A stretch of 64,000 bases of DNA from Schizochytrium sp. TIO01 (taxonomy: Eukaryota > Protista > Bigyra: Labyrinthulomycetes), in the NCBI GenBank assembly GCA_004764695.1, contig SMSO01000007.1:2115270-2179269 (forward strand). Direction: 5' to 3'. Below the pieces are notes generated by a model that had not been told where the DNA came from, searched no databases, and saw nothing but the letters and a program-made list of their open reading frames with translations. Made by a program: the position numbers and the translations under genes. Every line of letters begins with the position of its first letter. Positions within the stretch are counted from its first letter, which is position 1. This document shows positions 47,657 through 64,000 of the stretch, piece by piece.

Positions 47657-49147
47657 CTACAGGGGGTCCATCATTGAAGATGGTTGCCCCAACATGGGCA
47701 TATTCAAATTGGTCGATGTAGGTTCCTTCGCACCGGAAGCAGGGATAGGCACGCCCACAGGCTTCAAAGGATCCTCAGCGTCAAGTGCCCCTGAGTCAGA
47801 CTGCGCCTGGATCTCCTCTTTCGTCCGTAAGTGCACCCTGCGCAGATGAGACTTCAGATTTGATTTGTGGCTGGAACGTTTGCCGCACTCAGGGCATTTG
47901 TAAGGCGCAAGACGCTGATGTACTGTCCGAAAGTGGTTGCGAAGGTTGCTTCTTTGCGTGAAGCGCTTATCACACACATTGCACGTGAACGGACGGCGGC
48001 CATCATGGACTGTTGCAATGTGTACTGTGAGGGATTTTTTCTCTGAGAAGCTTCTGTCGCAGCGAGGACATGTAAAGTCACGTTGCTTGTTGTGCACGTT
48101 GCGAATGTGGACCTGTAGTGTCTCAGGCAGACCAAAAGACTTATTACAGTGCTCGCAGACTTGGTCCCGGCGTTTCTGGTGAATCGTACGGATGTGGCGG
48201 TTTAGGTGCGACTGATTCGAGAAAAGTTTTCCACACTGAGAACAAACGTGCTGGGTGAGTCGCTTAGAAGGATGATCAAGATGCATATGCCTCAAAACGT
48301 CTTTGGTGGACGAGAATTGCTTCTTGCAAACCTCGCACGATACGTTGTGTTCCAAGTTTACATGTGTCATCAGCACCGTTCGATTTGGCGCAATCGACGC
48401 ACACACTGGGCACTTAACCGGCCCATCGATGTCCGCTTCCTGCAGCTGTTCCTCAATCTCTCCCGGAGTCGGCCCCCTTGACTCTGCTAACATAGCCTGA
48501 TACGGTCCTTGCGCTAGCGGCGTGCGAATGATATCATGTGGCTCCAAACCTGGATGTTGCTGCTGCTGTTGCTGTTGCTGCTGATCTCCACCCATCACCT
48601 GTTCCTGCAAAGCCTGCCCTTCGTGGCCTCCAACCTCGTCTGCCTCTTGAGGAATCATGCCCCCAGCATGCCTAGATAGCCTTCCTTGCATTGGATTCTC
48701 CTCTCCATTCCCATTCTGCAACTCCATCTGCATTTGGGTCTGCATTCCGAGGTGGTTTAGCTGAAGCTGTTGCGGATGCATGTGACGACTATCGAGGATG
48801 GGTACGTGTCCAGACTGACCGTTCGCTGCATCGATGTTGGTGACGTTCATGGCATCGTTGTGCGCGTCAACATTGGCGCTATTGGAGGCATCTAGGTCGA
48901 GGTGGTCATGCCCCATAAAATAGTCGGGCGCAACAGCGTCAAAGGTAGGCTGCATAGGCGGTTGGGGCGCGCGCATGTGATCGTCAGGGACTCGCACAGC
49001 GCCGTGGGATCGGAGAGGGGGCGGAGGGCGGTTTGTTAACATAGCCATGGCGAGATCTGCCTGAGGAGGTGAGGTTGAGGAGGAAGAGGAGCTGGACGAA
49101 AGAATTTCAGGAACATCGCGAGGACCAGAACGCTTTCGTTTGGACAT
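47657..49147 (-). CDS. C2H2 zinc-finger transcription factor (7 fingers, Q/M/H-rich N-terminus)
   Basis: 496-aa ORF, aaaATG context, N-terminal KRKR NLS-like motif. Fingers: CPVC..HVNLEH, CEVC..HMHLDH, CSQC..HIRTIH, CEHC..HIRNVH, CPRC..HIATVH, CNVC..HFRTVH, CPEC..HLRRVH. Confidence 0.95.
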   Translation of the reverse strand: MSKRKRSGPRDVPEILSSSSSSSSTSPPQADLAMAMLTNRPPPPLRSHGAVRVPDDHMRAPQPPMQPTFDAVAPDYFMGHDHLDLDASNSANVDAHNDAMNVTNIDAANGQSGHVPILDSRHMHPQQLQLNHLGMQTQMQMELQNGNGEENPMQGRLSRHAGGMIPQEADEVGGHEGQALQEQVMGGDQQQQQQQQQHPGLEPHDIIRTPLAQGPYQAMLAESRGPTPGEIEEQLQEADIDGPVKCPVCASIAPNRTVLMTHVNLEHNVSCEVCKKQFSSTKDVLRHMHLDHPSKRLTQHVCSQCGKLFSNQSHLNRHIRTIHQKRRDQVCEHCNKSFGLPETLQVHIRNVHNKQRDFTCPRCDRSFSEKKSLTVHIATVHDGRRPFTCNVCDKRFTQRSNLRNHFRTVHQRLAPYKCPECGKRSSHKSNLKSHLRRVHLRTKEEIQAQSDSGALDAEDPLKPVGVPIPASGAKEPTSTNLNMPMLGQPSSMMDPL

Positions 49148-50087: not shown

Positions 50088-51140
50088 TCAGGTAGCACCG
50101 TACAGACGCTGGCGAACTCGGGCCTCAAAGGTAGCAAGGTGTATACCAAAATTCATAATGTTGCGGTCACCAGTGCGCCATTGCCGTGAAAAGAACTCCC
50201 GTAAATAATGACCAAACTGCTCAGCGAAGATTGCTACAGCCCGGTCGTGGAGATCATGGCGCACTGTGGAAGGATCGTCCGAGAGTAGCTTTGAATTTTC
50301 TGTGGTCGACGAGTCTCCAAAGTCAGCTTCATCGCCATTTATTTCCAGCTCAGTATCGTCACCGGCTGCACCTGGAGCCGCAAAGAAAATATGATCGAGT
50401 TGACGAGTCTCGAACATGCGCAAAGTGAAGCCTGCAAGGTTGATACCAGTAATGGCAAAACCCAGTTCCTCATAGAGGTTCATAATGAGACGAGCAGCGT
50501 CCTGATTGCGCTCCACAAAGTGAACCAACGCCTCGAGGCTCAAAAGTCCCATTCCACGAAAGTCTGTGCCGGGATCAGGGCCCTGAAATCCAACGCGCTT
50601 CCAGTCCTTTCCGACCGGAGCCGCTTCTCCCGGGAGCAAACCCTTCCAGAGCCTTTGCAGAAGTTCCGTATGAAAAGGTTCTTGAGAATCAAACTTCACC
50701 TTGCGTGAGCGATCAAGCTCCACCAGAAAACTATTGGCCTTGCGAAGATCTCCGAGACAACGTCGTAAGTGTCGCAACCGGGCGTTCTCCACCCCAACAA
50801 CCTTGAGATCCATGATATTTGTAGCAACACTATTCACGTTGAAGCCCTCGCTGACGTCGATAAAAATAAGCTCGCGTACATTGGGTAGCTGGCGCGTTAA
50901 TTGCAAGCTTTTGCTCAAAGATCGTGACATGCGGACCGAATGCCACGCCTCGCCATCAAGAATTCTTTGGATTTCGCATTTGCCCGTGACCTGATGCAAC
51001 ATCCACTTCACAAGACGACGTTCCATGGACCATCGGGGATCTTGCTTGTCCAAAGTCTCAGCGCCAACACTCCGAACGAGACTTTGAACAGGCCTTAAGG
51101 CTCCTCGAGAACCTGAGGTGGAGCTTGCCTTGGATGACAT
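50088..51140 (-). CDS. ELMO/CED-12 domain protein (ELMOD-like, putative ARF/ARL GAP)
   Basis: 350-aa ORF with the ELMOD signature WKRVGFQGPDPGTDFRGMGLLSL, FAITGIN and C-terminal NIMNF. Confidence 0.9.
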   Translation of the reverse strand: MSSKASSTSGSRGALRPVQSLVRSVGAETLDKQDPRWSMERRLVKWMLHQVTGKCEIQRILDGEAWHSVRMSRSLSKSLQLTRQLPNVRELIFIDVSEGFNVNSVATNIMDLKVVGVENARLRHLRRCLGDLRKANSFLVELDRSRKVKFDSQEPFHTELLQRLWKGLLPGEAAPVGKDWKRVGFQGPDPGTDFRGMGLLSLEALVHFVERNQDAARLIMNLYEELGFAITGINLAGFTLRMFETRQLDHIFFAAPGAAGDDTELEINGDEADFGDSSTTENSKLLSDDPSTVRHDLHDRAVAIFAEQFGHYLREFFSRQWRTGDRNIMNFGIHLATFEARVRQRLYGAT

Positions 51141-55150: not shown

Positions 55151-56903
55151 CCATCCTGCTTCCGTGCTGTCTGTCTCGAGGAAAGTAGGTACAGCGCTTT
55201 CAGGCTGTGTGTGAGGGAGACATTGTAGTCGTTGTTATGTTGTTGTAAAGAGTTTTTGGAGTCAGCTGTCTATGTACCGCATAGTCTACGGGTTGTGTAT
55301 GTAAGTGAGTTATAGAGCACTATAAACAATTTGTGGCCGAATGATCTACTTGTAAGCGTGATATATCGCACTTTAATTAACTGAATAAACTGAAAAAATA
55401 GAATTGAAAAAATAGGGCCTAATTGAGTTAGTTATCAATGTTCCTTTCGATTTCTTTTTCATTTTCCTTTTAATTAAAACAAACTAATCAATAATAATAG
55501 GAATAACAATAGACTAATAATGATCGATTGATTGATTGATTAATTGATTGATTGAGAAGCGAGTGAGCGAGCAGTCACCACCGAGCAGGAGCCGCGGCCA
55601 GCGGTCTGCAGCGCACGCGGGAGTCGCGAGCGCCGCAGAGAACCCTGCGCGCACTCCACAATTGCCTCATCAAGGTCCTTGTGACCAGCAGTGTTAGCAA
55701 ACACTCGCTCGCCTCTTCGATCGGTGCATCGAGAAGGGATTCGATTATTGAATCAATTCTAAACGAAGAGAAGTCCTGCCCAGGCCTCGAAGGAGATTGG
55801 CCTGCGCAGCGACAGTGGCGGGGAACTACCCAGAGCTGTAAACAATTCCGGCATAGACTTGGCTGAGGGTATCAGAAAATCTGCAGGCAAAAAGCCCTGA
55901 CTTGCGAGAGGCCCAAAGCAGCGCGATCGCCGGCGTGAGCGAGGGATCTTAAGCCTCGACAAAAGAGAGAATTTTTCTTTTTTTGTTATTTTTTTGTTTC
56001 ACCAAGAAAAAAGAAAGCACAGAACACAATTTATTATATTGGTGCATCCTGAACACTCATCCGTTCTAGAGCTCATCCCTGCGTTTATTCACACGAACTC
56101 GTGCCTTCTTCGGAATCAAGAAGATCGACCGCACGCTGGTTGGTTAGTCTAGATCTCCTTGATTTACTGTAATTTGCTTCCTGGGCCCCCGGTTCGTCGG
56201 TCGTTCGTTCGTGTAGAGAACAAAGTCTCCTTTACCAAACTGTGCGCGCGCCTCGAAGAGAAAAGTCGTGAACGCAGTGGGAACACATTACATATATTGA
56301 ATAAACGGGTTAGGCAAGGAAAAGCGCAAATCCGAGAGGAGCTCGGCTCCTGCTAGAAGCGGAGTGGCGAAGACCTAATTAATTTCACTCTCAAGTTTAA
56401 CAACCCCAGTTTCCCTTCAGATTTGCGGTCTAATTAGAAATTAGAAGTAGTAGTGGTAGAAGCGCAACAAGACTGGTTGAAGAGCCTACATTTACTCCGT
56501 GTTGAAATTTGAAAAGATTCAAATTGATTGCATCACGCGTTCAAGTACCTTCCCGAGTTATACGTACTTTCCTGGCCCTCTTTCTTTACCTTCTTTTTAC
56601 TGCAAATATCAATAGTGTAGTGGTAGTAGTGGTATTTAGCTGTGCTCTTTTGGGGTTGGCAGATTTTTAGAACAGGCTAAACCTCTTGCCTTCTTTCGTT
56701 TGTTTGTGGACTCAATAGTATAAAGTGGGGCTGTGGGGGGTGGTAAATCGATATTATCTGGCCTTCGTCCAAGAGTCGTAATTCCTTTATTTTGCTGGAT
56801 TATTAATTAGGTCACTTCCCTTTTTGCATCAAAAAAATTGATACTTTGGCGCCCCCTCGCTCAGGATAGGACCCCGAGTGAACGAGAAAATAAACCCAAC
56901 ACG

Positions 56904-59900
56904 ATGAAGGAGCTCGAGGCCCTGCAGTTTTACCTGCCGGCCGTAGTGGCACAACACATTTCCGAATCAGAGCGCGACGCGAATGGTTTGTTCAGACCTT
57001 CCACACAGCACTTTGATGAGATTGTCTGCTTGTTTGCAGACATGAGCGGCTTCACATCACTCACAGAACGACTATGCAGTATGGGTCCTGACGGTCTCGA
57101 AGATCTTTCGGCAAATCTTAACAAATTTGTAACGCAGCTAGTCAAGACTGTGAGCAAAAGTGGAGGCGATGTGCTAAAATTTGCTGGAGACGCTGTCATG
57201 GCCCTCTGGCCTGAGATTGATCCAAATGATTACCAACTTCGCGTGCAACGTGCCGTTCAGTGTGCAATGGATATCCAGCTTCGTCTGGACAAGTTTGTAT
57301 TCAATGTTTACGAGAAAGACTTTGAATTTAGAGATATTGAGGCTCCCGCGGACAGTAAAGGCTCGAAAAAGGACGAATTTATTCTTCGTGCTAAGCTTGG
57401 GTTGGGCTCCGGAAAATTGAATATTATGCATCTAGGTGGACACGGAGACCTAATTCAGCGCGAGCGCCTAGAATATGTAGCCCTTGGCCCTGCTCTTATG
57501 GAGGCAATTGAGAGCGAAAACAATGCCAAACCAGGCGAAGTAGTCGTCAGTTCAGAAATCTGGAAAATGGTTGGCGACTATTTTATAATGGGGAAGAAGC
57601 TACCTACCAACCGGATCGTGGTCAAGGAATGGCGCCCAGAAAGCCGTGTCACATGGAAAACCTACGACCGGAGTATCCGTGGTGGGTCCGAAACGGAGCG
57701 TAAACTATGGAAGTATGTCCCTAATGCTGTAATGCCGTACCTACTCGAGACCAACGATGAGTTCTGGGCTCCTGAACTCCGCACAGTGACCACCCTTTTT
57801 TTCAACCTAGGCTTAGACATCCCAGAGCTCAGCAATGGCAAGAAGACAGACAAACTTGCTGATGTATTTTATGAAATTCAAGGTGTCGTTCTCTCCTACG
57901 AAGGTACGATTAACAAATTTCTTGTTGATGACAAAGGTGCCACTCTCATTGCTGTATTTGGCCTTCCTCCTTTCAGTCATGAAAATGATCCGCTGCGGGG
58001 GGTGTTGAGCGGCCTGAAGGTCCTTTATAGCCTTTACAAACATGATCTCCAAGGCGCAGTTGGCATCTCTACTGGACTTGCATTTTGCGGTATCATTGGA
58101 CATGCCACAGGTAACCGTCGAGAATACTCTGTCATTGGCGATTCTGTCAACTTAGCAGCACGCCTGATGCAAAAGGCTCGTGAGAAAAAGTGCAGTATTC
58201 TCATCGACCGCACTACCAAACAGCGTCTGCAGACTACTTCTCTTGATTTCATCTCAGGAACAATATCTGTGAAAGGCAAGCGTGACCCTGTGCAGTGCTA
58301 TCAGATCAGTTCTAAATCAGATCATAGCTACCGCTCTGTGCAGCTGGCACGTCTTGGTGAACTTGGGCAGTACAATGTCGTGATGCTCGGTAAAAACAAA
58401 CCCAAGAGCCGCCGCCGGGCTACGCGCACCGCCGTTTCAAACCCGAACGAAATGAAGGCTCTTGAGTTGGAGCAAGTGAAGGCCATGAACGACACAAGTC
58501 GCTTTTTCCAGCGCAAGCGTGCGGCCAAGGCTCGTCTGCAGGCTATCACAACTGCACATGACGCTGCTCTCATTACCGCAAATCAACACTTCCAAAGTGG
58601 TCACTCTAGATCCTCCTCTGACGCCATTTCAGATTTTGTTGATGTCGCGCCTGACGATGAAAGCAATGATGCAGAAGACGATGTTGCACTTGCACGCATC
58701 AAGTATCGACACAAGACCGATGAAGTTGAGACAACAATTGCTGTCTCAGAAAGCCGAATGAACACTATCCAGGACCTCACGAGTGCCGCAATAGCCAGTC
58801 TGATCAACAAAGGTTTTATTGAGTCCTCCGCAGATGATTCCGCTTACTATGATCTCCTGTGGGTTCGTGATGCAGAACGTGTGACACTCAAGCCAGATCG
58901 TTTACTTTCATCTCTTCCGTTTTCTAACATGGATGTCTTGACTATGATTTTGGTCCGCTTCGACACCCGCCGAGATATGCCGTCATTCAACACTCCTGAC
59001 CCGCATGGGGTTGAACACATTCGAGAACGTCTTGCTGCATTTCAGGAAGAGGTATTTGCTGGTAATGGTTCGCGTCTTGTGATTTTGGAGGGCGAACATG
59101 GTGTCGGTAAAACCTATCTTGTAGAGAACTTTTTTCTCAGTCGTGAGGGCTCCGCATATGACGAAGGCGAAGCAATCTTTGCCTACGCACGAGGTAACCC
59201 ATTCGAAGTAGGACGTCAAGCAAGGCCTTTTGCAATCTGGACACAACTGATGGAGGAACTTCTTGAACCTCCGAATGCAGTAGAGGCATCTAACACCACC
59301 CGGGAAATGTACATCACTGATGCGATCAAAACCGCCAGACGGATCTATGGCACGGAGGTTGTCCCCGAGGCCATGGATGGGCGTCTTCACCTGCTTAATC
59401 GCATTTTGAATACACGATTTCCTCGTCCCGGCGACGAAAGCCCTGTTACAGCAAACCCTGCACGACCTGATCCTCTACCCGTTACCCCCAAACAGACAAA
59501 GAAAAACCGCGGCATGACTAAGACAAAGAACATCCTTGGGGCTGATGGTAAAGTGACCCGCGTTAAAGCCTTGTCAGTATTATGGGGCTCTACTGACGAA
59601 AACTCTGGATCAACTCGCTCACACTCGGAGTCAGTCACCAGCCCTACACTTACTAGCAGTGCACCTGGTATTCTCAGTCGCCTCTCAAAACGCGCCTCAA
59701 TGTTGCAACGCCTCTCTCGTAGATCTGGAAGTGCAAGCAGCAGCATTGAAGCCTTTGTTGCAGATCCGGATGTTCGCTCTATTATCCGCATTCTTGCTGC
59801 AGTGTTGGGCGGTGTGGCTACACGCACGCCACTGACTATTGTAGTGGACGAAAGCCAGTACCTTGATACCTTTTCGCTTCTCGTCTTCCAAGAGCTTACC

Positions 59901-62081
59901 GAAAGCTGGAGTCGCTCAAACATGTTCATGATTCTGTTGCGCAGGCTTACTCGCATAGAGCGTTCTGTGCTTCTTCAAACTGACAATGCAACCTTGTATA
60001 ATGCTCACCAACGTGTGTCGATGTTCCGCCCGCCTCCCGTGAAAATGCATTCTACCCTCAAATCCCATTTACAGGCGCGCACCTCTCAGACAGATGAATT
60101 AGAGAGTTCATCCATGCTGCATGAACGCCTCAAGATGCTCGACGGAGTTATTCAACTCGAGCTCATATCTCGCCCTCGTAATACCTACGATATTGTTCGG
60201 AATTTCTCCAATGTCGAACGTGTTCCGACTGAACTGATTGAGTTTCTGGCCCAGAAAACAAAGGGAAACCCTCTCTACATTGTGGATGCCATTTCTCACT
60301 ATACTGACATTGGGCTGATCGTCAGGTCTTCTACACCCGAACCGAGTCTGGCATTTGCTGGCGATGAGTTTGATCGTTTGCTCAATATCCATCAAGTACC
60401 CATTCCCCTTTCAGTTGATGCAATAGTTGGTTCTCTCGTAGATAAAATGACACTTATTCAACAACTCATCATTAAGGTTGCAGTGATCATAGGTGATGTT
60501 TTCACACGTCAAATAATTAGAGAGATCTTTCCTGTAGCAACTATGGGCAAGGAGATGGTCAGTCATAACTTTGACGAGCTAGTTGCATCCGGTGTCATAG
60601 TATTTGAAAAGAGTGACCAGGGCCTCTTCGGTCAAACCCAAGACCCGGACACAATCCGTTATACCTTTGAGTCTGGCTGGATGGTCGAAATCATGCGTCA
60701 CCGCATGCTCAACAAACAAAAACTCAAGCTCAACACAAAGAAGAAGCGTTGGCAAAAACAGATTGACGAACAGCAAAAGCTTGATCACCTCCGGAAAGCT
60801 AAGGGTAAGCTTGAAATTGACCATAGTGGGTTTTTGCAAGTTCGCAAAGAGAACGCACGCAATATTATGAATCCTTGGAAACCCCGGTGGTGTCGTCTTC
60901 GTGGCCACGAGCTTATCCAGTTTCATGATCGCGATGAAACCAAGCGGCTTGAAGTAATTATTCTTGACCAGACTTCCGAAGTCTCCATAGACCCAATAGG
61001 ATTTTTTGGCATAGAATCCAAGTTATCTCCTGGAGCTGGTCCGCCCGCTTTGCACTGCTTTACGATCCGCACTAACCGTTGGGAGAAAAAGGGTAAGATT
61101 CGTGTCAATGCCCGTTCCTTTACACTGGGATGTGAGGATCCAGAAGATCGTGTACAGTGGGTTTTCAAGGTGCAATATCAGATTGATTTGCTAAAGATTC
61201 AAGCTCAGGACGATGATGTAGACAAGAAAGACCCTGCTGGTTCCATGCGTGATATTTATGGTCAGCCGTCAATTGTTAAATCGCATCGATTCTCCATGTC
61301 TTCCACCCCCGACGCAATCCATAGTCATGGATTAGACGAGGACGCTCCTCACCCACTTATTGCTCCAGAGCCTCCTGGTCGCTCAAGGGGGACCAAAGGA
61401 AGCATGTTGAAAACCGTTTTCGGATCTCGTAGCTCTGACACAAACAAAGGATTTCTCAAGCCTAAAAAGAAATCCGGTACCGAACTGAAGTCTAGTGTCC
61501 AATATGGATGTGACATTTGTCTCATGACCCCTGAAGCATTTGCAGAAATCTCAAAACCTGAAAACCTCATGCTCTTTTGGTCAGAGACTGACGGGCCTGG
61601 AAATTCTCGTCAGAGTGTGAAGCAAATTCCAATGCATTCTAGCGAAATGTACTATGAGTGCGCTGAAATGTCTCTGGTCTCATACAATTCCAACGGGGAG
61701 ATCGATGGCTACCTCATGGGTAAGCTTCGCACATACCGTCGGAATCAAGTCATTGGACTTGTCACTGCATGTGGGGTATTGCCTTGGGCTCGTCGGCTTG
61801 GCATCGGCCATAAGCTGTATGCTAAATTCTTTGCCTTGTGCCGTGGCAAAGGCTGTCGCTTTGTTCGCTGCAATGTTGAACGGGCGCAGCCTATTGCCAT
61901 ATCTTTCCACAGATCTTTGATGTTTGATGAAGATGAAGATCAGACCAATTTTCTTGCCCGTGCAGGTGACGATGGTAAGATTTGCTTTATTAAAGACCTC
62001 GATACATCTTCCAAAGATGAAGAGTTGGTTGAGTATGTCAACCCTCTACATGTGAAACGTACTTCGTCAACGTCATCGTGA
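56904..62081 (+). CDS. Soluble adenylyl cyclase (ADCY10/sAC)-like STAND protein with tandem class III cyclase domains, P-loop NTPase, PH and GNAT domains (~1725 aa)
   Basis: C1: CLFADMSGFT and DVLKFAGDA. C2: INKFLVDDKGAT and RREYSVIGDSVNLAARLM. Walker A GEHGVGKT (59091), Walker B IVVDESQYLD, STAND KGNPLY. PH: SGFLQVRKE..PWKPRWCRL...EDRVQWV. GNAT: GVLPWARRLGIGHKLY...AISFHRSL. The first ATG is at 56904 (the ORF-track start at 56838 is TTG). Confidence 0.93.
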   Translation: MKELEALQFYLPAVVAQHISESERDANGLFRPSTQHFDEIVCLFADMSGFTSLTERLCSMGPDGLEDLSANLNKFVTQLVKTVSKSGGDVLKFAGDAVMALWPEIDPNDYQLRVQRAVQCAMDIQLRLDKFVFNVYEKDFEFRDIEAPADSKGSKKDEFILRAKLGLGSGKLNIMHLGGHGDLIQRERLEYVALGPALMEAIESENNAKPGEVVVSSEIWKMVGDYFIMGKKLPTNRIVVKEWRPESRVTWKTYDRSIRGGSETERKLWKYVPNAVMPYLLETNDEFWAPELRTVTTLFFNLGLDIPELSNGKKTDKLADVFYEIQGVVLSYEGTINKFLVDDKGATLIAVFGLPPFSHENDPLRGVLSGLKVLYSLYKHDLQGAVGISTGLAFCGIIGHATGNRREYSVIGDSVNLAARLMQKAREKKCSILIDRTTKQRLQTTSLDFISGTISVKGKRDPVQCYQISSKSDHSYRSVQLARLGELGQYNVVMLGKNKPKSRRRATRTAVSNPNEMKALELEQVKAMNDTSRFFQRKRAAKARLQAITTAHDAALITANQHFQSGHSRSSSDAISDFVDVAPDDESNDAEDDVALARIKYRHKTDEVETTIAVSESRMNTIQDLTSAAIASLINKGFIESSADDSAYYDLLWVRDAERVTLKPDRLLSSLPFSNMDVLTMILVRFDTRRDMPSFNTPDPHGVEHIRERLAAFQEEVFAGNGSRLVILEGEHGVGKTYLVENFFLSREGSAYDEGEAIFAYARGNPFEVGRQARPFAIWTQLMEELLEPPNAVEASNTTREMYITDAIKTARRIYGTEVVPEAMDGRLHLLNRILNTRFPRPGDESPVTANPARPDPLPVTPKQTKKNRGMTKTKNILGADGKVTRVKALSVLWGSTDENSGSTRSHSESVTSPTLTSSAPGILSRLSKRASMLQRLSRRSGSASSSIEAFVADPDVRSIIRILAAVLGGVATRTPLTIVVDESQYLDTFSLLVFQELTESWSRSNMFMILLRRLTRIERSVLLQTDNATLYNAHQRVSMFRPPPVKMHSTLKSHLQARTSQTDELESSSMLHERLKMLDGVIQLELISRPRNTYDIVRNFSNVERVPTELIEFLAQKTKGNPLYIVDAISHYTDIGLIVRSSTPEPSLAFAGDEFDRLLNIHQVPIPLSVDAIVGSLVDKMTLIQQLIIKVAVIIGDVFTRQIIREIFPVATMGKEMVSHNFDELVASGVIVFEKSDQGLFGQTQDPDTIRYTFESGWMVEIMRHRMLNKQKLKLNTKKKRWQKQIDEQQKLDHLRKAKGKLEIDHSGFLQVRKENARNIMNPWKPRWCRLRGHELIQFHDRDETKRLEVIILDQTSEVSIDPIGFFGIESKLSPGAGPPALHCFTIRTNRWEKKGKIRVNARSFTLGCEDPEDRVQWVFKVQYQIDLLKIQAQDDDVDKKDPAGSMRDIYGQPSIVKSHRFSMSSTPDAIHSHGLDEDAPHPLIAPEPPGRSRGTKGSMLKTVFGSRSSDTNKGFLKPKKKSGTELKSSVQYGCDICLMTPEAFAEISKPENLMLFWSETDGPGNSRQSVKQIPMHSSEMYYECAEMSLVSYNSNGEIDGYLMGKLRTYRRNQVIGLVTACGVLPWARRLGIGHKLYAKFFALCRGKGCRFVRCNVERAQPIAISFHRSLMFDEDEDQTNFLARAGDDGKICFIKDLDTSSKDEELVEYVNPLHVKRTSSTSS

Positions 62082-62552: not shown

Positions 62553-64000
62553 TTACTTTGGGCGTTCCCATACAGATGCTCCTGTGTGGTGGTTGTAATA
62601 GTACGAGATCTGATTAGCATCATCCCAGAACTCTTCCCAACCCTCTGGTAATGCTTGATGAAAATCTTGAGCTTCGGCTTGAGCTTTGCCACTTTGAAAA
62701 TTCTGTCGCCCAGTGGTTTGGCCTGCAACCTCCGTCCGCGCTGCTTCGGACGTGAACTCCTTAGGTGTTTCTAATATACTGGGAGATTCGAGCCCTTCTG
62801 CAGCAGATTCAACCGAGCTACGCCTTCTACCACCTACTAAACGTGAGACTCCATTCCAGCGGCTTTGTAGACGAGCCTGAGTTTCTGGGTCGATATACTC
62901 ATCTCTCTTCTCTGCAATAAAATCTTTGGTTGTCTCTAAAGCCCCCGCAAGTCGTCCACCAATTTTCTCAGCAAGCACATTTCCTTCTCCACGTTTCGCT
63001 TTAACAAGGCCTTCTTGAGCCATATTAAGCTTACCAATGAGGAATGAGTTAATCTCAAATGGAATCTCACCCTTGAAAGGTACATCAATGTGAAGCTTCA
63101 GAGTACAAGACTGAAAGCCTTTGGGTTTCTTGCTTGCAAGTGTTGCAGCACGGATTTTCTTTGTCATGTCTCTTTTGAGCTGCTTTTTAGTAGGTGTTGA
63201 AGCATCAGACTCGGCAATCTCTGTATCATTTATTCCTGCATCTTCACCTGCCTCTTCATCATCCCCGGGCAAATCGTTCTTCTTTTTCTTCTTCTTTTTC
63301 TTCTTCTTTTTCTTCTTTGCGTTCTCATCTGGAACGTCCCAATAATTCTCCGTGGCTTGACGCTTGCGACGTCGCTCTTCTTGTATGCGACTCACGGCAT
63401 CTTCAGGCTTATCTGGATCATTTTCAGCCTTATCTCCAACACTTGTGATTAAAAAGTACTGATCATTCAACCGAATGTAGTCATCTTGTTCGACAAAAGT
63501 CTTCCACTCCTCCGTTACATGAATATACAAACATTCATTATCATGAATTTTTATAGGGCCTGGAAGGCGTTCTCCATAAGGTAAAGCAGCACCCGCAGCA
63601 ACTGCTACGCGGCCCCATGCGGTACCCTTCCAGCCCATACGCTTCTTTTCTTTGGTTTTTTCATCGTCAGTCTCAAAAATTGGCGCAATACCTACAACAG
63701 CCTTCAGACGGTTTGTCAACTTCTTACGCTCTGCCATATCATGCTTCATAAGACGCCAATGATCACGTTCTTTTAACCTTTGAGCTCGTAGCATTGTTTT
63801 GCCTACTTTGCGATCTCGTCGGCCGCGATATAAGGCTTGAAGCTTGAGAGCTACCTTCTCCATACCCTCTTGCTCAGCCTGTTTTCTCAATACTTTGTTC
63901 CGCTCAGCATCTACCGCAGCCTTCTTCTTTGCGCGAATAGCATTATCATGAGCCGCGAGTTCCATAGAATAATATGGCAGCGGGTAGAAATTGTGTAAGC
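62553..64000 (-). CDS. IQ-motif and C-terminal WW-domain protein, 5' end probably outside the window
   Basis: IQ-like LQALYRGRRDRK; WW domain LPEGWEEFWDDANQISYYYNHHTGASVWERPK; poly-K tract. The frame stays open upstream of 63965 (LHNFYPLPYYS-M) to the window edge. Confidence 0.88.
   Translation of the reverse strand, partial: LHNFYPLPYYSMELAAHDNAIRAKKKAAVDAERNKVLRKQAEQEGMEKVALKLQALYRGRRDRKVGKTMLRAQRLKERDHWRLMKHDMAERKKLTNRLKAVVGIAPIFETDDEKTKEKKRMGWKGTAWGRVAVAAGAALPYGERLPGPIKIHDNECLYIHVTEEWKTFVEQDDYIRLNDQYFLITSVGDKAENDPDKPEDAVSRIQEERRRKRQATENYWDVPDENAKKKKKKKKKKKKKNDLPGDDEEAGEDAGINDTEIAESDASTPTKKQLKRDMTKKIRAATLASKKPKGFQSCTLKLHIDVPFKGEIPFEINSFLIGKLNMAQEGLVKAKRGEGNVLAEKIGGRLAGALETTKDFIAEKRDEYIDPETQARLQSRWNGVSRLVGGRRRSSVESAAEGLESPSILETPKEFTSEAARTEVAGQTTGRQNFQSGKAQAEAQDFHQALPEGWEEFWDDANQISYYYNHHTGASVWERPK

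Follow-up and report, generated by a model that had tools for sequence, protein, structure and literature searches.

What does an adenylyl cyclase gain from an acetyltransferase-type domain at its far end? A gene of the thraustochytrid Schizochytrium sp. TIO01 raises this question. It lies at 56904..62081 (+ strand) of the 64,000-nucleotide stretch analyzed here (the window; G000:C6:2115270-2179269, that is, positions 2,115,270 to 2,179,269 of contig SMSO01000007.1 in assembly GCA_004764695.1), which belongs to a 64-Mb assembly of 37 contigs. We find that this is one real thraustochytrid (Labyrinthulomycetes) gene with a 1,725-residue product, whose domains almost certainly follow in the order soluble adenylyl cyclase (sAC)-type (class IIIb-like) C1-C2 cyclase, beta-grasp, STAND NTPase (nucleotide-binding, helical, and winged-helix domains), coiled coil, PH, disordered linker, and GNAT. 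The functions given to all of these domains below are predicted from their motifs. The cyclase-STAND core is homologous to sAC and, judged by those motifs, would work like it.

A single open frame encodes cyclase, STAND, PH, and GNAT domains

The coding sequence consists of 1,725 codons and a stop, without introns, as indicated by the list of open reading frames (ORFs), the translation, stop counts in each frame, and full-length colinear orthologs. The frame is open from 56838 to 62081 (+), its first Met lies at 56904, and the N-terminus from that Met (MKELEAL...) agrees with the N-termini of the orthologs. Over these 5.2 kb the coding frame holds only the terminal stop, versus 48–132 in the remaining five frames. 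Pfam matches above curated cut-offs to Guanylate_cyc, AAA_16, PH, and Acetyltransf_1 all fall on this one protein. Together with structure models, they bear out the four domains that a first-pass annotation, made from the sequence alone, had recognized here (sAC-like C1-C2, STAND, PH, and GNAT).

A word-based search returned four proteins in which all four of these Pfam families recur: P0001, 99.7% identical and from an independent Logan assembly; P0002, the "Adenylate cyclase type 10" of Hondaea fermentalgiana, also a thraustochytrid, which is 59% identical, likewise 1725 aa long, and the sole named member, its name being automatic; and the JGI proteins P0003 and P0004. Among the best 120 of the 352 matches, PH or GNAT occurred in these four thraustochytrid-type proteins only; the remaining matches, to cyclase-STAND(-TPR) proteins from bacteria or elsewhere, cover the cyclase quarter alone. 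The same kind of search with the STAND-PH region gave the four close orthologs and nothing else. In the conservation, tree, and bicarbonate-site alignments described below, P0001 stands in for the window protein, from which it departs at 5 of 1725 positions, all outside the motifs.

Because a claim of rarity rests on the absence of relatives, we searched exhaustively with HMMER, comparing the PH+GNAT part (431 aa) with 1.84 billion representative proteins. PH occurred together with GNAT in only three of the 37 matches at E<=1e-3, all from this family: P0001, P0121 (a 671-aa fragment), and P0128 (1593 aa). Cluster look-ups revealed several short "stand-alone" matches to be pieces of the family; the cluster of P0122 includes P0170 (1680 aa, full architecture), and that of P0004 includes the full-length P0157. 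An environmental fragment, P0123, spans the end of PH, the linker, and the start of GNAT. A scan of JGI metagenomes added one contig (L023) that runs from the STAND Walker B motif through GNAT in a single open frame; the other 79 loci matched the GNAT core only, as ordinary GNAT genes standing alone would. The known members are thus six full-length proteins of colinear order, together with several fragments and this metagenome contig. Within the source genome the module is single-copy: a search there turned up neither another PH+GNAT gene nor a closely related GNAT standing alone.

The architecture is therefore not a common one, with PH+GNAT found nowhere else among the representatives searched, and PH and GNAT are not a separate unit, being in frame with the remainder of the protein in seven independent sequences. 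The first-pass annotation knew of no described protein with this architecture. That holds for the literature we searched, in which no paper described an adenylyl cyclase (AC)-STAND-PH-GNAT protein, a labyrinthulomycete AC-phosphodiesterase fusion, or a phosphoinositide 3-kinase (PI3-kinase) that binds cyclic nucleotides; it does not extend to databases, where the protein already sits under the Hondaea name. AC-STAND-PH-GNAT is rare, not unique: it is present in public databases but unrecognized, and so undescribed rather than unseen.

Identity to the Hondaea protein is 60–76% in C1, C2, PH, and GNAT and 33–48% in linkers and inserts. In the most divergent orthologs the folded domains are 22–45% identical (GNAT, 22–39%), and the signature residues of each module are retained. 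The linker between PH and GNAT (aa 1433–1534, 61200..61505, +), predicted to be disordered with a predicted local distance difference test score (pLDDT) <50, has 12–34% identity; in P0128 it is missing (102 gaps), so that GNAT follows PH directly with both in frame. Conserved folded domains, variable linkers, and an in-frame linker deletion form the pattern expected for one polypeptide in which all folded domains are under selection.

The cyclase domains retain the catalytic residues of sAC and lack its bicarbonate-site arginine

Two stretches match Pfam Guanylate_cyc (PF00211, E 1.2e-13), indicating tandem class III domains on one chain: C1 at aa 35–235 (57006..57608, +) and C2 at aa 286–470 (57759..58313, +). 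Both were also placed by alignment with the ADCY10 structure and with the orthologs. When the N-terminal 532 residues were compared with the PDB, the top matches were human ADCY10 structures 4CLF and 4OYA (E ~1e-35), with C1 and C2 both aligned. The cyclase motifs quoted in the first-pass annotation are present in the translation where it had put them (FADMSGF, aa 44–50; KFAGDA, 92–97; INKFLVDDKG, 336–345; GDSVNLAAR, 412–420), as are the three STAND motifs described in the next section.

Alignment with human ADCY10 pairs each catalytic residue with a counterpart. In C1, metal-binding D47 and D99 correspond to D46 and D96, and K95 to K92; in C2, the substrate pair K334 and T405 corresponds to K338 and S409, and the transition-state residues N412 and R416 to N416 and R420. 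All seven positions are kept across every ortholog, that of S409 being Thr in P0128. A Lys with a Ser/Thr is the pairing of class III cyclases with adenine-type specificity, and guanylyl cyclases carry a Glu/Cys-type pair.

The bicarbonate site differs. In an alignment of 13 related sequences, the column of human R176 holds I202 here, Ile in proteins of the GNAT type, and Phe in the phosphodiesterase-type proteins described below, with moderate alignment confidence at this place; gecko ADCY10 has Arg there, as do two of three bacterial relatives. We accordingly rejected bicarbonate regulation of the mammalian type, though K92 is conserved. Because Ile202 occupies the Arg176 column, activation by bicarbonate of the mammalian kind appears unlikely.

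A beta-grasp domain precedes a STAND module without repeats

An AlphaFold2 model of the middle of the protein, aa 566–1294, is of modest quality (mean pLDDT 57). At aa 597–686 (58692..58961, +), after the cyclase and ahead of the NTPase, the model and its structural alignment with VIA-align identify a beta-grasp (ubiquitin-like or Ras-association-like) domain, which the first-pass annotation lacks. It is modeled as strand-strand-helix-strand-strand-strand (pLDDT 65–80) and aligns with RA, RBD, ubiquitin-like, PB1, and FERM-F1 domains (Z 8–9.3, root-mean-square deviation 2.1–3.0, 73–91 residues), including the plexin RBD, FAT10, the RalGDS RA domain, the RBDs of PI3K-gamma and SIN1, and PB1 domains. 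The domain is 70% identical in Hondaea and 16–37% identical in remoter orthologs. A modeled fold of this kind at this position hints at a small-GTPase input.

The STAND nucleotide-binding domain follows at aa 700–1015 (59001..59948, +), as judged by Pfam AAA_16, motif conservation, and VIA-align. The AAA_16 match covers aa 706–788 (E 1.9e-10), and the Pfam matches to NACHT and AAA_22 are weak. Walker A (GEHGVGKT, 730–737) and Walker B (VVDESQ, 980–985, within VVDESQYLD, 980–988) are kept by the orthologs, except that P0128 has D-N in Walker B. A low-complexity insert occupies about aa 851–955. In VIA-align the domain matched plant NLR resistosomes, ORC/Cdc6, and archaeal AAA+ proteins at Z 8.5–10.6; for the middle model, plant NLRs scored 10.0–10.6 and ORC/Cdc6 and archaeal AAA+ proteins 8.4–9.5. 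The helical and winged-helix domains lie at aa 1076–1257 (60129..60674, +), placed by the secondary structure of the model, VIA-align, and a partial match to TIGR03903. The GxP motif of the helical domain is GNPLY at 1121–1125; the model shows helices and a beta-hairpin wing after the nucleotide-binding domain, matching MarR-type winged helices at Z 8–9, and the NLR WRR4A matched at Z 10.0 over model residues 472–708. Foldseek returned no match to the middle model at E<=1e-3, giving weak rows only.

A long lysine-rich, coiled-coil-like helix (aa 1258–1300, 60675..60803, +; model residues 693–728) joins the winged helix to PH. It is 58–69% identical among close orthologs and occurs also in the phosphodiesterase paralog described below. 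Pfam detected no tetratricopeptide repeat (TPR) family at E<=0.1 anywhere in the protein, and between winged helix and PH the model predicts no repeat solenoid, only this one helix. We rejected TPRs concealed after the winged helix, since the sequence leaves no room for them and has no Pfam match. That PH and GNAT stand where TPRs would be expected, as the first-pass annotation put it, is then a fair description; that ancestral TPRs were "replaced" cannot be shown.

The C-terminus carries an Akt/Grp1-like PH domain and a GNAT fold with an intact P-loop

For aa 1295–1725, AlphaFold2 gave a model with mean pLDDT 72 and a predicted template modeling score (pTM) of 0.48. The approximate extents first proposed for PH (60820–61195) and GNAT (61510–62000) agree with the limits from Pfam and AlphaFold2, 60804..61199 and 61506..62009 (both +). 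The PH domain (aa 1301–1432) is supported by Pfam over aa 1306–1424 (E 8.8e-10, 39.5 bits against a cut-off of 25.1), by AlphaFold2 (pLDDT ~87), and by Foldseek, in which it matches the PH domains of Akt1 and Grp1. It carries the basic beta1-beta2 motif K-Xn-(K/R)-X-R as K1315 ... K1326-P-R1328, kept in all six orthologs. The role of this motif in phosphoinositide binding is known from the PH domains of Akt and Grp1.

The GNAT domain (aa 1535–1702) is indicated by Pfam (Acetyltransf_1, aa 1584–1670, E 1.7e-7), a PDB match, AlphaFold2, Foldseek, VIA-align, and conservation; among NCBIfam profiles, GNAT matches fell below threshold. The fold is whole, with pLDDT ~90 over aa 1537–1698 and VIA-align matches at Z 15–17 over 140–158 residues that cover entire GNAT chains; Foldseek and VIA-align both point to Naa10, Ard1, RimI, Naa30, Naa50, and YqjY. 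The P-loop that binds the pyrophosphate of acyl-coenzyme A (acyl-CoA) has the consensus Gln/Arg-x-x-Gly-x-Gly/Ala (PMC4964394), which R1630-R-L-G1633-I-G1635 matches. The orthologs have RRQGIG (two), RRQSVG, RRHGVG, and RGQGIA, so that five of six keep the consensus and P0003 has Ser at the first Gly.

The best PDB sequence match of the domain is human NAA20 (phmmer E 1.7e-6, ~29% identity over 90–97 aa). H73, N116, and Y123 of NAA20 are important for catalysis and substrate recognition (PMC7494357), and the window protein has L1619, Q1662, and H1669 in their place. On these replacements we rejected an identity as the NatB catalytic subunit. The GNAT subfamily is not secure, because unrelated bacterial GNATs (PA2271 and YqjY) lie within 1 Z unit. 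A separate observation concerns P0131, a stand-alone GNAT of 178 aa with 30% identity to the GNAT domain here, which is recorded, like P0128, on a 315,039-bp ENA contig; the domain may have come locally from this protein, or the protein may be a copy of it.

A sister protein carries a phosphodiesterase in the GNAT position

The source genome contains at least 10 sAC-like cyclase genes, mostly intronless ORFs of 1200–2900 codons. They include loci L012–L020 on contigs C3, C4, C24, C30, C31, and C35, most of them with AAA_16, and Pfam finds no TPR in the sAC-like genes at E<=0.001. One paralog, an intronless gene for 2638 aa (L011:1876-9789 = G000:C30:3209875-3217788, -), combines cyclase, AAA_16, PH, and PDEase_I (E 1.7e-80), thus placing synthesis and breakdown of the messenger on a single chain. 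Its cyclase is 35% identical to that of the window protein, and the stretch from winged helix through coiled coil to PH is colinear (22% over 305 aa, E 4e-19); the two differ in that the paralog is ~900 aa longer and has its C-terminal PDEase_I in the GNAT position. Orthologs of this phosphodiesterase (PDE) type are P0160 (Hondaea, named as a phosphodiesterase only), P0161 (JGI), and P0162, with C2- and GYF-bearing variants P0164–P0166.

We built a maximum-likelihood tree of the cyclase region from 30 sequences, with no collected row omitted, by a quick search with support from the SH-like approximate likelihood-ratio test (SH-aLRT) only. The GNAT-type clade received 99 and its sister, the PDE-type clade, 91, and both form a group with a third paralog of the genome at 93. 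Gecko ADCY10 adjoins this PH-bearing subfamily weakly (83, on a long branch); because several branches, this one included, are long, deeper placements in the tree are unsafe. The most economical interpretation is that the types share one cyclase-STAND-PH core and that differing enzymes were added to it C-terminally. The window protein belongs to a PH-bearing sAC-like subfamily in which the C-terminal slot is taken by a GNAT in some members and by a cyclic-nucleotide phosphodiesterase in others.

Two records related to the PDE type call for separate mention. P0162 (2642 aa) is labeled Durusdinium trenchii and falls inside the thraustochytrid PDE-type clade, being 40% identical to the PH-PDE part of the paralog; assembly contamination, gene transfer, or a broader distribution could account for the label. 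At L012, two adjacent ORFs in different frames (L012:283-2331 and L012:2231-5791, both -) overlap by ~100 nt. The first holds the cyclase domains, the second weakly resembles the beginning of PDEase_I (E 0.0025), and the pair may reflect an intron, a frameshift, or a decaying PDE-type paralog.

A proposed mechanism with two catalytic arms, and its alternatives

We tentatively read the protein as a membrane-targeted, NTP-switched signaling enzyme with two putative catalytic arms, one for synthesis of cyclic AMP (cAMP) and one for acyl transfer; we hold this reading at a little less than an even bet. The PH domain, with its Akt/Grp1-like basic motif, would bring the protein to phosphoinositide-containing membranes. 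The STAND module would respond to its ligand or nucleotide state by switching conformation or oligomeric form. At the N-terminus, the pseudo-heterodimeric cyclase would convert ATP to cAMP, as its Lys338/Ser409 specificity pair suggests. The GNAT domain would bind acetyl- or acyl-CoA via its intact P-loop and acylate a protein amine in the vicinity, with a proton relay that is most likely non-canonical, His1669 taking the place of the usual Tyr. Output of cAMP and acylation would then coincide in place and time.

Where GNATs with an intact P-loop are fused to regulatory domains, they are usually the catalytic part. We lean toward an active acyltransferase because the P-loop is intact over deep divergence, because the corresponding slot of the sister protein holds an enzyme type, and because the described fusions of GNATs with regulatory domains are catalytic (MtPatA, PMC4964394). 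In the sister, the evidently catalytic PDEase_I sits at the corresponding place, preceded by winged-helix, coiled-coil, and PH parts homologous to those here. Several points weigh against two catalytic arms: in STAND proteins the region C-terminal of the winged helix is usually the sensor and not the effector; the three NAA20 residues are replaced, with the His changed further to Gln in one ortholog; no conserved acidic general base is evident in the ortholog alignment of the GNAT domain; AlphaFold2 models the beta6 region as a helix, leaving beta6-beta7 non-canonical; and the geometry between domains is predicted without confidence (pTM 0.48).

The main alternative, which we consider possible though rather unlikely, takes the GNAT domain for a ligand sensor. 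Acetyl-CoA, CoA, or acyl-CoA, together with phosphoinositide, would relieve autoinhibition of the NTPase and so gate cAMP synthesis, making the protein an acyl-CoA-gated adenylyl cyclase. PH and GNAT do lie C-terminal to the winged helix, in the usual place of a STAND sensor; the replaced NAA20 residues and the lack of an apparent conserved general base point the same way, and the intact P-loop makes binding of a CoA nucleotide plausible. sAC itself is regarded as a metabolic sensor, and a 2025 study of the purified full-length enzyme found no isoform-specific regulator (PMC12802110). A sensor is harder to reconcile with the sister subfamily, in which a real enzyme type fills the same position, and with known fusions of an intact-P-loop GNAT, which use it catalytically. 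Nor is the missing Tyr decisive, since a conserved Tyr general acid is present in 62% of characterized GNAT enzymes, so that ~38% manage without one (PMC4964394).

It is improbable that the GNAT domain is a pseudo-enzyme or scaffold, with no productive acyl-CoA binding or transfer and a role in protein-protein contact or dimerization only. The replaced canonical residues and the non-canonical beta6-beta7 region of the model would fit such a role, but the P-loop is retained among orthologs with only 22–39% GNAT identity, unlike in the inactive GNAT domain of Eis, which lacks the conserved P-loop Gln/Arg (PMC4964394).

Independently of what GNAT does, the product of the cyclase could be cyclic GMP instead of cAMP, a prospect to which we give little credence. 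Dictyostelium sGC, a homolog of sAC, is a guanylyl cyclase, and the sister phosphodiesterase is called "cAMP-specific" by automatic annotation only. The specificity pair speaks against it: Lys338 with Ser409 (Thr in P0128) is adenine-type, as is K334/T405 of human sAC, and not Glu/Cys-type.

Finally, the idea that adjacent cyclase-STAND and PH-GNAT genes, or a mis-assembly, were read as one ORF is scarcely credible and close to refuted: a disordered, poorly conserved linker would suit it, but the frame is open over 5.2 kb against 48–132 stops in the others, the order is colinear in six full-length proteins of different assemblies plus a bridging PH-GNAT fragment and a metagenome contig, P0128 has GNAT directly after PH, and the independent Logan assembly yields a 99.7% identical protein.

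Cyclic nucleotide and phosphoinositide signaling in the same genome

Matches to the cyclic-nucleotide monophosphate (cNMP)-binding domain number at least 94 in the genome, which, with at least 10 sAC-like genes, makes for an unusually large cyclic-nucleotide toolkit. Three loci encode a PI3K accessory domain, and two of the three lie within ORFs that also bear cNMP-binding domains. By their domain matches, one encodes a PI3-kinase of 1365 aa with the order WW-cNMP-GAF-C2-PI3Ka-kinase (L021:1371-5465 = G000:C24:3490870-3494964, +), and the other a PI3-kinase of 2231 aa with three SH3 and four cNMP domains ahead of RBD-C2-PI3Ka-kinase (L022:2757-9449 = G000:C30:1920256-1926948, -). cNMP-binding PI3-kinases alongside PH-bearing cyclases suggest a direct loop from cAMP to phosphoinositides.

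Taken further, the window protein may be one node of a labyrinthulomycete cAMP-phosphoinositide-acyl-CoA circuit, an excitable membrane system of group-specific fusion proteins. We regard this wider picture as speculative and quite unlikely as drawn. The two cNMP-binding PI3-kinases would respond to cAMP by making 3-phosphoinositides, lipids that would draw in the sAC-like cyclases with a PH domain. Of these, the GNAT type would raise cAMP further and couple signaling to acetyl- or acyl-CoA, the key metabolite of these oil-accumulating cells, and the PDE type would provide delayed negative feedback. Any coupling of acyl-CoA to cAMP signaling could matter for the regulation of lipid metabolism in thraustochytrids, which are industrial producers of docosahexaenoic acid and squalene.

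Neighboring genes in the window

The window is eukaryotic in character, with few long ORFs and no tRNA genes. Domain or family matches identify four other ORFs: a Rad51 exon (945–1808, +; E 1e-121), a C2H2 zinc-finger protein (47657–49147, -), an ELMO/CED-12 domain protein (50088–51140, -), and a WW-domain protein (62553–63965, -) whose gene converges on that of the cyclase. None has an apparent functional tie to the cyclase gene.

Comparison with known systems

One close known counterpart is mammalian ADCY10, in its full-length form (sACfl). Both proteins begin with a tandem C1-C2 cyclase bearing the same catalytic residues and continue into a STAND P-loop NTPase. They differ after the winged helix, where the window protein has no repeats and has a coiled coil, PH, and GNAT instead; they differ also in its beta-grasp domain between cyclase and NTPase, the Ile in the Arg176 column, and the intronless gene. 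Because the bicarbonate Arg and the C-terminal repeats are both absent, we call the protein sAC-like and not an ortholog of ADCY10. In the window protein the cyclase-STAND core is linked to domains with ligands that are open to guessing and testing, namely phosphoinositides and acetyl- or acyl-CoA, and a sister protein carries an enzyme that destroys the product. Control of a cyclase by a STAND switch can thus be approached here in a tractable system.

Bacterial cyclase-STAND-TPR proteins (~1350 aa; PF00211, PF13191, and TPR) share a homologous cyclase, 30–35% identical, and AAA_16 with the window protein. They run on into TPR repeats and lack PH and GNAT. For the GNAT domain, the nearest solved relatives are NAA20, NAA10/Ard1, NAA50, and RimI, which have in common with it the "G-E-x-x-G-Y-[IL]-M-G-K" strand and the P-loop; where NAA20 has H73, N116, and Y123, the window protein has Leu, Gln, and His.

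The one described case in which cAMP signaling is physically joined to a GNAT is MtPatA (Rv0998) of Mycobacterium, which couples a cNMP-binding domain to a catalytic GNAT (PMC4964394) and thereby provides a working cAMP-to-acetylation logic. Its architecture is otherwise unrelated: Pfam finds no cNMP-binding domain (PF00027) in the window protein, and we rejected regulation of the MtPatA type on that ground. MtPatA is bacterial and of a receptor type. The protein described here would be the first eukaryotic example found of a cAMP-producing enzyme fused to an acetyltransferase-type domain.

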